A DNA stretch of 64,000 nucleotides from Salpingoeca rosetta (lineage: Eukaryota > Protista > Choanoflagellata): assembly GCA_033442325.1 (NCBI GenBank), contig JAWQFM010000001.1:2854420-2918419 (forward strand). The letters run 5' to 3'. Positions 213-3,011 of this stretch are shown here, piece after piece (position 1 is the first letter of the stretch; the number at the start of each line of letters is the position of its first letter). Below the pieces are notes generated by a model, which was not told where the DNA came from, did not search any database, and was given only the letters and a program-made list of their open reading frames with translations. The translations under genes were made by a program, and so were the position numbers.

Positions 213-3011
213 GGACGTCTTGACACGTGTGCACTCGGTGTGCTTGACAGGCGACGTGTTCCACAGCCTGCGCTGCGACTGTGGGCCCCAACTGCAGGCG
301 GCACTTGCACAGATCGATACTGCTGGGTGTGGGGTGCTGGTTTACATGCGTGGGCACGAAGGTCGCGGCATTGGTCTTGGCAACAAGATCAAGGCCTACG
401 CCCAGCAGCAGCAACATCGCCTCGACACGTACCAGGTATGCATCTACTGTGCCCTGTCTGACATGAGAGCGGTTGTGTGTGTGTGTGTGTGTGTGTGTGT
501 GTGTGTGTGTGTGTGTGTGTGTGTGTGTGTGTGTGTGTGTGTGTGTGTGTGTGTGTGTGTGTGTGTGTGTGTGTGTGTGGGTGGGTGGGTGTGGGTGGGT
601 GTGGGTGGGTGTGGGTGGGTGTGTAGGTGTGTGTGTGCGTGTACGCTACGGAGATGATAGTTTCGTCGACGATGTGGGGATCTTCGATGCTCATGTCTCA
701 ACACACACACACACTCACTCACCCATTGACATACACACACATGCCATTTGCTGCGTTTCAGGCGAACGAGTCGCTTGGATTTCCGTCGGATCTGCGCACG
801 TACGAGATTGCCGACGCAATTCTGCACAGCCTCCGCCCAGCCAGCGTGTGCCTGCTTACCAACAACCCACTCAAGCCCACCGCCCTGGCTCGCGTGCGTG
901 TGTCACACGTCAAACAGCTGCGGCTCGCGCCGTCTCTGACCAGCGCCGCGTACGTGCTGGCAAAGCACAAGCGCGAGCAAGAGATTGCCACTGCTTTGCG
1001 CAGTACAGTCGTTGGTGGCAGCGCTGGGGACCTTGCGGCCATTGTCGCAGACGACAACTGCAAAGACACACGCAACAATGACGGCAGCAGCAGCAGCAAC
1101 AACAACAACAACAATAGCAGCGGCAACAGATGTGTGGTTGACGAGGACCATCTGCACGATAGCAGCCGCGGCTCTACAGCATCTCCCAACACCAACGCTT
1201 CGTCCCCCACGCCAGCAAGCACACCCGTTGCATCGATTGGCGGTGATGTCAGCGGCGTTGCAGTGACAGTGTCCAGCGCAGTCACCAACGCAAGCTGCTT
1301 CTCCAACGCCAACAACGTTACCACGAGCAGCATCGACACCACCACCACCACCACCACCACCACCACCAGCGGCAGCAGCAAGGGGTTGCTCGCGTCATCG
1401 CCGGCATTGGAGCTGCCGCCACATGTCCTGGATTGCCTGCAAGCAAACGCGACGCAAGTGCCAGCGGCCGTTGACGAGCTGTTCATGCGGCGCGCGCTGT
1501 CCCTGGCGCGGCTGGGCCGTGTGAGCGCGCCGCCAAACCCTTGGGTTGGCTGCGTGCTTGTTCGCGACGGCCACGTCATCGGCGAGGGCTACCACCGGCG
1601 CGCTGGCATGCCGCATGCCGAGATTGAGGCCATGGCCGACGCCGTGCTGCGTGCAGGCATCGACATCATGGAGCACGGTGGCGCCGCTGCTGCTCTCGCT
1701 GACACGCCGTTTGCGGCCTTTGCCAACACGGCTGCCGCCCAGACGCACAGACTGCTGCAGCGGGGCAAGAGCAAGCGTGCTGCGAGTGAGGCCAAGTCCA
1801 CCACTGCGAAGACCCCAAGCGCATGCACGTTGACCACTGCTACGGGTGTGGTGGAAGCGGTGCGAGCTGTACTAGCTGGCGCCACGGCGTACGTCACGCT
1901 GGAGCCCTGCCACCACCAGGGGCGCACGGGCCCATGCGACCAAGCCCTTGTGCAGGCCGGCGTTGCACGCACGGTGATTGCGGTCACGGATCCCGACGAG
2001 CGGGTGTCTGCGCGTGGGCTGGCGTTTCTGCGCTCGCGTGGCGTAGAGGTTGCCACGGGCGTGTGTGGGGCGGAGGCGGAGGCGCTCTTGGCGCCGTACC
2101 TACACCAGCGGCGCACGGGCCGACCCTTGTGCGTCATCAAGACTGCGATCAGCATCGACGGGCGCGTGGCGTGCAAGGACGCCACCTCCAAGTGGATTAC
2201 GGGGCCGCTCGCTCGCGCGCGCGCACACAAGATGCGGGCGGAGTCGCAGGCGGTGTTGTGTGGCATCGGCACGGCGCTTGCCGACAACCCAACTCTCAAT
2301 GTGAGGCTTGCGCTGGCCTCGCTCCCGCCCGGAGAGCGCGCTGCGTTTGCACCTGCCATGCATGCAGCTTCACCGTCGCCCGTGACTGTCGCTGGCGCGG
2401 GTGCACACTTCGGAAGGGGGATGCCGCTTGTACGGGTGGTGCTGGATGCAAGGGGCCGCTTGTTCGAGGGCCGCCTCCTTGACACGTCCATTGCGCCCAC
2501 CATTGTGTACACGAGCCGCGACTGCTCTGCACAGGCGCTCAAGACCTGGGCCGCGCATGGGGTGGAGGCTGTGGTCGTTGACACAGCTTGTGCCAGTGGT
2601 TACGCTGGCGCTTGTAGGGGCGTTGACACTCGTGTTGGCGGTGACGCTGCGGCGCCAGTGCTGCTGGATCTGATGCAGGTGCTGCGCGACTTGGCCAAGC
2701 GCGGTGTGCTGCAAGTGCTTGTGGAAGGCGGCGCGCAGGTGCACTCGTCGTTTGTGCAGCAGGGGTTGGGCGACCAGCTTGCGGTGTTTGTGGGGCCGAA
2801 GCTGCTTGGCGGCACAGCTGTGCCCTGGCTCCCTGACGAGCTGGCATCCACCATGGCACACGCGCGCACCTACTCGCTTGTGCGCGTGGAGACGTTTGCT
2901 GCCGCTGCACGTCAACAACAGGGCGACGGCACCGACAGCAGCGAACACAAACAGGGCAAGGAGGTGTCCACGGGTGGCGACATTCTCTGCGTGTATCGCA
3001 AGGCTGATTGA
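213..3011 (+). CDS. ribA-ribD: Riboflavin biosynthesis fusion: GTP cyclohydrolase II + pyrimidine deaminase + reductase; 5' end lies outside the window
   Basis: Exon 213-435 ([20 protein letters not shown]...[16 protein letters not shown]) splices in phase 0 to exon 762-3011 ([14 protein letters not shown]...LLTNNPLK), completing RibA. A S/T/N linker follows. Then deaminase motifs ([33 protein letters not shown]) and reductase motifs ([33 protein letters not shown]). TGA at 3009-3011. Confidence 0.95.
474..640. repeat. (GT)n microsatellite, representative of dozens of intronic (GT)n/(CA)n tracts across the window
   Basis: Directly visible. Similar tracts at e.g. 6100-6266, 11290-11400, 19706-19801, 26121-26200, 33133-33325 and 61795-61880. 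Confidence 0.99.

Follow-up and report, generated by a model that had tools for sequence, protein, structure and literature searches.

The window analysed here is a stretch of 64,000 nucleotides (nt) from the choanoflagellate Salpingoeca rosetta (C1:2854420-2918419 of genome G000, a 55.4-Mb assembly in 68 contigs), and it opens in the middle of a gene of riboflavin biosynthesis. It is likely, with a probability that we put at roughly 0.83, that this nuclear, intron-containing gene gives rise to a single polypeptide of ~1100 amino acids (aa), in which 3,4-dihydroxy-2-butanone 4-phosphate (DHBP) synthase (RibB), GTP cyclohydrolase II (GCHII, RibA), a linker and the deaminase and reductase of RibD follow one another. 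The linker between RibA and RibD is long, disordered and rich in Ser, Thr and Asn. A sequence-only reading of the window had proposed that GCHII, deaminase and reductase lie in pathway order in one polypeptide of a probable animal relative. Pfam matches and RNA reads across the splice junction bear out both the order and the single chain, and a choanoflagellate is what the organism proved to be.

Gene structure and transcript

The coding segments at window positions 213-435 and 762-3011 are the final two exons of the gene for XP_004998708.1 (EGD72136.1; UniProt F2TVP0) and represent the 3' two-thirds of a gene whose full polypeptide is ~1100 aa long. When compared with public proteins, the translation of the last exon is 100% identical to a 1091-aa S. 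rosetta protein (P0001), and the C-terminus of the window translation is identical to that of XP_004998708.1. The public name of F2TVP0, 'riboflavin biosynthesis protein RibA', mentions one activity only; the precomputed Pfam annotation of the same entry lists PF00926, PF00925, PF00383 and PF01872. The four-domain architecture is thus already visible in public databases, though under-named.

The part of the gene that lies upstream of the window consists of five more exons, which encode RibB and the start of GCHII. A genome-wide hidden Markov model (HMM) search with PF00926 gave three RibB exon matches 0.7-1.9 kb upstream of the window on the same strand, which is where the sequence-only reading had suspected a RibB domain. 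Our reading of the upstream DNA leads to a seven-exon gene, all on the plus strand, if a candidate exon 4 that lies outside the annotated model is included: exon 1 at C1:2852460-2852576 or -2852585, depending on which of two possible donors is used, exon 2 at C1:2852847-2852947, exon 3 at C1:2853267-2853774, the candidate exon 4 at C1:2853944-2854048 and exon 5 at C1:2854260-2854327. Exon 6 (window 213-435, C1:2854632-2854854) holds the GCHII core, as seen from its PF00925 match and its alignment to the Mycobacterium tuberculosis RibBA structure 4i14; position 213 is its exact acceptor site, and the genome HMM match to GCHII ends at C1:2854854, that is, at window 435.

Exon 7 (window 762-3011, C1:2855181-2857430) begins with the C-terminal part of GCHII (window 762-986, with the motifs LLTNNP and YVLAKHK), again identified by PF00925 and the alignment to 4i14. 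There follow the linker of ~160 aa (window 987-1472), which is of low complexity in translation and is kept in the mRNA, the RibD deaminase domain (window 1473-1982, from PF00383 and invariant motif columns), the C-terminal pyrimidine reductase domain of RibD (window 2133-2852, from PF01872 and fold superposition) and the stop codon of the fused gene, which the list of open reading frames (ORFs) places at window 3009-3011. Between the two exons lies intron 6, 326 nt with GT...AG ends (window 436-761), which is defined by its sequence and by RNA junction reads and carries a (GT)n microsatellite that exceeds 100 nt. Exons 6 and 7 do not share a genomic frame, and splicing joins them. The earlier description of the domains as being in frame is therefore right for the polypeptide made after splicing, but positions 213-3011 are not one open frame, as the intron interrupts them.

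RNA from three stranded RNA-seq runs and from one set of contigs was mapped to exon 7 and part of the intron upstream of it (L020:2860-5235). Read depth is unbroken from the acceptor at 762 to the stop codon, at ~3-80x per 80-nt bin, with dips that coincide with repeats skipped in read mapping. Nearly all read pairs have their first mate on the minus strand, the usual pattern of a stranded library for plus-strand RNA. No splice joints or indels were found inside exon 7 in the three runs, and hence the ~160-aa linker and the inserts in RibD are translated rather than spliced out. The exon 6-7 splice is proven by 65 junction reads from the three runs and one contig, all carrying the last 30 nt of exon 6 at acceptor 762. 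The C-terminal third of GCHII shares exon 7 and its frame with RibD, uninterrupted by a stop codon, so that RibA and RibD cannot be separate proteins, barring post-translational cleavage. The C-terminus of RibA, the linker and RibD are thus on a single continuous mRNA, in line with the expectation of the sequence-only reading that the two would not have separate transcripts.

These data bear directly on the idea that the fusion is an artefact of gene modelling or assembly, or that RibD is made mainly as a separate protein from an internal promoter. The low-complexity linker of ~160 aa between RibA and RibD would fit such an explanation, as would a minor cluster of read starts at L020:3086 (window 866). 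Intron 6, however, splits GCHII and leaves an indispensable C-terminal third of this enzyme in the exon and frame of RibD, without a stop; the RNA depth is continuous, the exon 6-7 junction is present in 65 reads, and relatives have the same contiguous ORF in independent transcriptome and genome data. We regard this explanation as very improbable. Further upstream, a 1556-nt RNA contig reaches ~1.2 kb beyond the exon 6/7 junction, and the continuity from RibB to RibA rests on this contig, on the annotated model and on full-length ORFs of the Choanoeca flexa ortholog and of a second ortholog (P0029).

The RNA reads also reveal five positions at which all of them differ from the assembly, namely window 926 (C>T), 1637 (C>T), 1669 (T>C), 2601 (T>G) and 2618 (G>T). 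Three of these lead to amino-acid replacements (M645T, Y956D and R961S, numbered as in P0001), all of which fall in lineage-specific inserts. The RNA-seq runs concerned date from 2026, and a contig from 2023 also differs at window 926. The differences reflect either a different strain or errors in the reference.

Domains, active sites and the annotated model

GCHII is recognised in both exons of the window. In the frame containing window 213-435, PF00925 matches over profile positions 38-111 (E 1.3e-29, 103.3 bits), and in the 794-aa ORF at 627-3011 it matches over positions 109-159 (E 7.6e-9, 35.8 bits), the gathering cut-off being 23.3 bits; the annotated protein as a whole scores 176.5 bits. 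The same 794-aa ORF matches dCMP_cyt_deam_1 (PF00383, E 4.3e-17) and RibD_C (PF01872, E 2.2e-40, 139 bits). The zinc ligands, which the sequence-only reading had described as intact, can be followed codon by codon: the three zinc-binding Cys codons of GCHII are at window 241-243, 274-276 and 280-282, and the zinc-binding and catalytic codons of the deaminase are those for His (1614-1616), Glu (1620-1622) and two Cys residues (1908-1910 and 1935-1937). These deaminase residues belong to an HAE motif at 1614-1622 and a PC...C motif at 1905-1937, and GCHII has EGRGIG and NK..AY in exon 6 as well as LLTNNP in exon 7. In an alignment with nine homologs (A1), the deaminase columns H53, A54, E55, P150, C151 and C160 are invariant, as are K228, D234 and E423-G425 (EGG) of the reductase, in which the motifs KTAISIDG, WITG and VEGG are recognisable.

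The two halves of the annotated protein each resemble a known bacterial enzyme. Its first 400 residues align end to end with the RibBA of M. tuberculosis (RibA2, 4i14; E 2.7e-96), which, like the RibBA proteins of bacteria and plants in general, has the same order of RibB followed by RibA. The S. rosetta chain, in contrast, continues through the ~160-aa linker into a complete RibD, and in its annotated model the loop reads RENE-ACR-GD, which is unusual, and a short exon may be missing. The last 530 residues align with Escherichia coli RibD and Bacillus subtilis RibG (E ~1e-61 to 1e-59), and both domains, the zinc ligands and the reductase motifs of these proteins (2g6v; 2b3z and 4g3m) are conserved. 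What sets the S. rosetta RibD apart from them is its fusion to RibBA and its inserts, of which one is ~78 aa and another ~20 aa long, all predicted to be disordered. The largest is lineage-specific and lies within the deaminase domain (window ~1644-1877), and two smaller ones lie within the reductase domain. The RibD part, modelled with AlphaFold, has a predicted template modelling score of 0.76, with both cores confident and low local confidence (pLDDT, the predicted local distance difference test) in the inserts only. Superposed on full-length bacterial RibD and RibG it gives template modelling (TM) scores of 0.85-0.90 normalised by target length, the 0.90 (target-normalised) being reached with B. 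subtilis RibG (4g3m_A) across both domains.

Fungal riboflavin enzymes are unfused, and they reduce before deaminating. Fungi belong to the same opisthokont supergroup as S. rosetta, and their Rib1, Rib7, Rib2 and Rib3 carry out the same overall chemistry. Archaeal and yeast Rib7-type reductases match the reductase half of the S. rosetta protein only (E 1e-16 to 1e-5), and the match to yeast Rib7 itself is weak (E 2e-5, TM score 0.33 by query length). As the match to bacterial RibD is far stronger in both sequence and fold, the RibD part can be classed, from these comparisons, as the fused bacterial and plant type, and the earlier assignment to a bacterial-type RibD stands. A genome-wide HMM search gave no second RibD_C locus in S. 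rosetta.

Two points in the N-terminal half of the annotated model call for closer attention. RibB as such is well matched on the annotated protein (PF00926, 262 bits). Its loop, however, reads DRENE-ACR-GDL, whereas all aligned homologs have RENEGD, and the three additional residues, Ala-Cys-Arg, stem from the GT donor that the annotation uses for exon 1. A candidate GC-AG donor (GAG/GCATGT, at C1:2852576) lies 9 nt upstream and would give the canonical RENEGD; the alternative donors are thus C1:2852576 and 2852585 (L009:6157-6166). The second point concerns the start of GCHII. Exon 5 alone matches the GCHII profile from position 19 only, and annotated residues 233-390 cover profile positions 7-159. 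The candidate exon 4 (105 nt; L009:7525-7629) is of phase 0, is flanked by AG and GT and would encode LVAECELPLD; the corresponding stretch of the C. flexa transcript encodes LTAECLLPMD (7/12 identical). Scanned alone, this candidate exon gave no Pfam match. Taken together, these sequence features suggest that XP_004998708.1 probably contains two small errors, the donor that adds ACR and the skipped 105-nt exon.

An alternative view of the same features is that, with all four domains present, one of the two at the N-terminus is a pseudo-enzyme: RibB through the ACR insertion, or GCHII through the lack of its first strand. The fusion would then effectively be tri- or bifunctional, or the domain in question would serve only as a scaffold. 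The departure of the annotated RibB loop from the RENEGD of all aligned homologs is in keeping with this, as is the incomplete coverage of the GCHII profile, and the acanthoecid fusions discussed below do without GCHII altogether. Both apparent defects, on the other hand, could be removed by small changes to the model: the donor 9 nt upstream would restore RENEGD, and the 105-nt candidate exon is compatible in phase and matches C. flexa at the same place. Moreover, these are the sole RibB and GCHII loci of the genome, and the loss of either would interrupt a pathway of which the other genes are retained and expressed. A pseudo-enzyme among the four domains is thus, in our judgement, unlikely.

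Several points weigh against our reading of the gene as one polypeptide with four working enzymes. The first is that large inserts break up the deaminase (~78 aa) and the reductase. Should the mRNA be spliced as annotated, the function of one N-terminal domain, or of both, could suffer. The RNA reads cover exon 7, and the junction between RibB and RibA and the upstream exons are those predicted by the gene model. All four activities, and any channelling between them, are predictions from sequence. Finally, the deep branches of the RibD tree described below are weak, and the origin of this domain could be vertical within eukaryotes or lie in an old transfer in which intracellular bacteria or giant viruses took part.

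Related fusions and the origin of the gene

Proteins with the order RibB-RibA-RibD were found in C. flexa (881 aa), in P0029 (843 aa) and in several partial environmental sequences. A metagenome contig from the Joint Genome Institute (L107) has ORFs for RibB, for RibA and for the RibA C-terminus joined to RibD, in the same order as in S. rosetta, and its GT-AG intron of 150 nt falls on the homologue of the codon that holds S. rosetta intron 6, between DTY(E/Q) and AN. The acanthoecids Diaphanoeca grandis (P0145) and Helgoeca nana (P0034) differ in that RibB is joined directly to RibD, with no GCHII and a linker of ~30 aa in their transcripts.

Longer fusions also exist. When the whole protein was used in an exhaustive search without profiles, ~30 cluster representatives of ~1000-1350 aa were returned. 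Pfam analysis of six of these gave the order RibE-RibD-RibB-RibA in every case, with RibH in addition in four, and single proteins of ~1100-1350 aa with all five domains, in the order RibE-RibD-RibB-RibA-RibH, occur in uncultured genomes (P0146, P0147, P0149 and P0155; loci L022 and L105). These mega-fusions were at first taken to be eukaryotic, an interpretation that we dropped when their genomic contexts turned out to be mixed: a plain bacterial operon of ribE, ribD-ribBA and ribH, a dense contig on which ribH follows directly as an overlapping ORF, a Legionella-like contig, and one contig with many eukaryote-like genes, namely those for kinases, Ras and WD40 proteins. The bacterial ribE-ribDBA-ribH arrangement (P0159) and the mega-fusions of ~1000-1350 aa (P0146, P0147, P0149, P0150 and P0155) are the top-scoring non-choanoflagellate matches to the whole S. 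rosetta protein and have the same catalytic domains in one chain. They keep the operon order RibD-RibB-RibA, have no introns and fall into separate groups of the RibD tree, whereas S. rosetta has RibB-RibA-RibD.

Other combinations were found as well, with RibE-RibD fusions in Balamuthia and Euglena longa and RibB-RibA-RibH proteins represented by P0182 and P0225. Fusions of rib genes are frequent in bacteria (PMC5786535), and the giant viruses Orpheovirus and Indivirus encode RibB-RibA-RibH and multi-domain RibD proteins, with reported homology to Acanthamoeba castellanii (PMC5786535). The giant-virus proteins (ORPV_666 and ORPV_596 of Orpheovirus, and those of Indivirus) likewise combine RibBA with a third enzyme and are eukaryote-associated (PMC5786535). 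Their third partner, however, is lumazine synthase rather than RibD, and the lumazine synthase of S. rosetta is fused to riboflavin synthase.

Fusions of several riboflavin enzymes, taken as a class, are therefore widespread. Among the sequences found, only those of choanoflagellate type have the RibB-RibA-RibD order paired with a fusion of riboflavin synthase and lumazine synthase. The suggestion of the sequence-only reading that the architecture is unusual thus holds for the exact order of domains, which occurs only in choanoflagellate-like sequences, but not for riboflavin fusions at large. A full-text literature search found no paper on a RibB-RibA-RibD protein or on a two-gene layout of the pathway in choanoflagellates. 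We regard the S. rosetta fusion as a lineage-specific variant of a known theme and as moderately novel.

To place the RibD domain, it was extracted from 255 proteins, 70 of them from named bacterial genomes (the closest matches, with a bias towards Actinomycetota that stems from the search patterns), and analysed in a FastTree overview and in a quick IQ-TREE tree of 94 rows under the posterior mean site frequency model. Standard stand-alone bacterial RibDs form one clade in both trees, with support of 98-100. The S. rosetta domain lies outside it and groups with C. flexa and environmental sequences (support of 90 in the Shimodaira-Hasegawa-like approximate likelihood ratio test), and this group adjoins a haptophyte sequence (84; Pavlovales). 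Acanthoecids, Amoebozoa, Euglenozoa and the mega-fusions are also outside the bacterial clade, and their mutual order is without resolution. A forced clade of craspedids and acanthoecids was not rejected by the approximately unbiased test (p 0.51), the constrained tree being marginally better. The trees are compatible with a fusion in the choanoflagellate ancestor from which GCHII was later lost in acanthoecids.

A third choanoflagellate architecture was at first suggested by a RibD-RibB-RibA protein from the single-cell assembly of Craspedida sp. UC1 (P0148), and it was rejected when its RibD grouped apart from the choanoflagellates. It lies in the mega-fusion clade of the FastTree overview, and in the quick tree its partner is the mega-fusion P0157. 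As it fails to group with choanoflagellates in both trees, this protein may be foreign to the assembly.

The bacterial type of RibD raises the question of a recent horizontal acquisition, or of contamination, from a bacterium with a fused rib operon. Such an origin would be in keeping with the RibD-RibBA fusions seen in ribE-...-ribH operons on bacterial contigs and with the mega-fusions, with or without RibH, on bacterial-looking contigs. The S. rosetta gene, however, is part of a nuclear contig of 3.59 Mb, it is interrupted by six spliceosomal introns whose (GT)n content is typical of the genome, and it has one intron position in common with the environmental ortholog. In addition, its order of domains differs from the bacterial RibD-RibB-RibA, and its RibD falls outside the strongly supported bacterial clade, with other eukaryotes (Pavlovales). 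The introns, the shared intron position and the position in the tree make this explanation very improbable, and we rejected it. Since the RibB-RibA-RibD order is common to C. flexa and uncultured relatives, the sequence comparisons indicate that the fusion predates S. rosetta, and the introns and the tree position of RibD argue that it is not a recent bacterial transfer.

The riboflavin pathway of S. rosetta

Genome-wide HMM searches gave one locus each for GCHII, DHBP synthase and RibD_C. Riboflavin synthase, with its two Lum_binding repeats, and lumazine synthase are likewise present once each, and both lie in one open frame of 585 aa on the plus strand of contig 22 (C22:313859-315604; L021:1360-3105). 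This second fusion gene has one short intron near its 5' end and a poly-Q linker of low complexity between the domains, and its public annotation is that of a 479-aa 'riboflavin synthase' (P0293). Approximately six EukProt transcriptome entries and several environmental sequences contain this fusion as well; several of the EukProt entries bear ORF names in the choanoflagellate style, an assignment made by naming style only. From the single RibB-RibA-RibD locus and the fusion on contig 22, the core steps of the pathway, the phosphatase excepted, are predicted to be encoded by two genes in S. rosetta.

Three consecutive steps, from GTP to 5-amino-6-ribitylamino-uracil 5'-phosphate, would then take place on one chain, with deamination presumably preceding the NADPH-dependent reduction, as judged by the similarity to bacterial RibD. 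The RibB domain would convert ribulose 5-phosphate into DHBP, the second substrate of lumazine synthase, and both branches would feed the fusion of riboflavin synthase and lumazine synthase after dephosphorylation by a phosphatase. In bacteria, each of RibB, RibA and RibD forms at least a dimer. It is plausible, by analogy, that the S. rosetta fusion is for this reason a homodimer, held together by the dimer interfaces that its parts have in bacteria. Such a homodimer would fix a 1:1:1 stoichiometry and hold the labile product of GCHII near the deaminase.

We also entertain, tentatively and as a proposal that is more doubtful than not, that choanoflagellates ancestrally ran the whole core pathway on two polypeptides, RibB-RibA-RibD and riboflavin synthase-lumazine synthase, which acted as a channelling metabolon. 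If this were true, eukaryotes would have, in the covalent tether between riboflavin synthase and lumazine synthase, a counterpart to the 'heavy riboflavin synthase' capsid complex of bacteria. Riboflavin synthesis is reported to have been retained in choanoflagellates and fungi and to have been lost on the animal stem (PMC4339202). If the common ancestor of choanoflagellates and animals shared the two-gene layout, animal riboflavin auxotrophy could amount to the loss of only two genes. The arrangement bears on how easily the pathway could disappear, and on which order of reactions, the bacterial or the fungal, was ancestral in opisthokonts. A natural RibB-RibA-RibD chain, which would fix the stoichiometry of the two branches and place the reactive GCHII product beside the deaminase, is also a test case for channelling. 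S. rosetta is genetically tractable, so that a knock-out with rescue by riboflavin is feasible.

Two features of the surrounding DNA may be added. Head to head with the riboflavin gene, on the minus strand, lies a 1445-aa ORF (C1:2847918-2852255; L009:1499-5836) with a composition biased towards His, Arg, Ser and Asp. Far downstream, at window 48001-50000, the GC content falls to 0.38, compared with ~0.55 elsewhere in the window, and this segment contains several (TG)n and (CA)n microsatellites.

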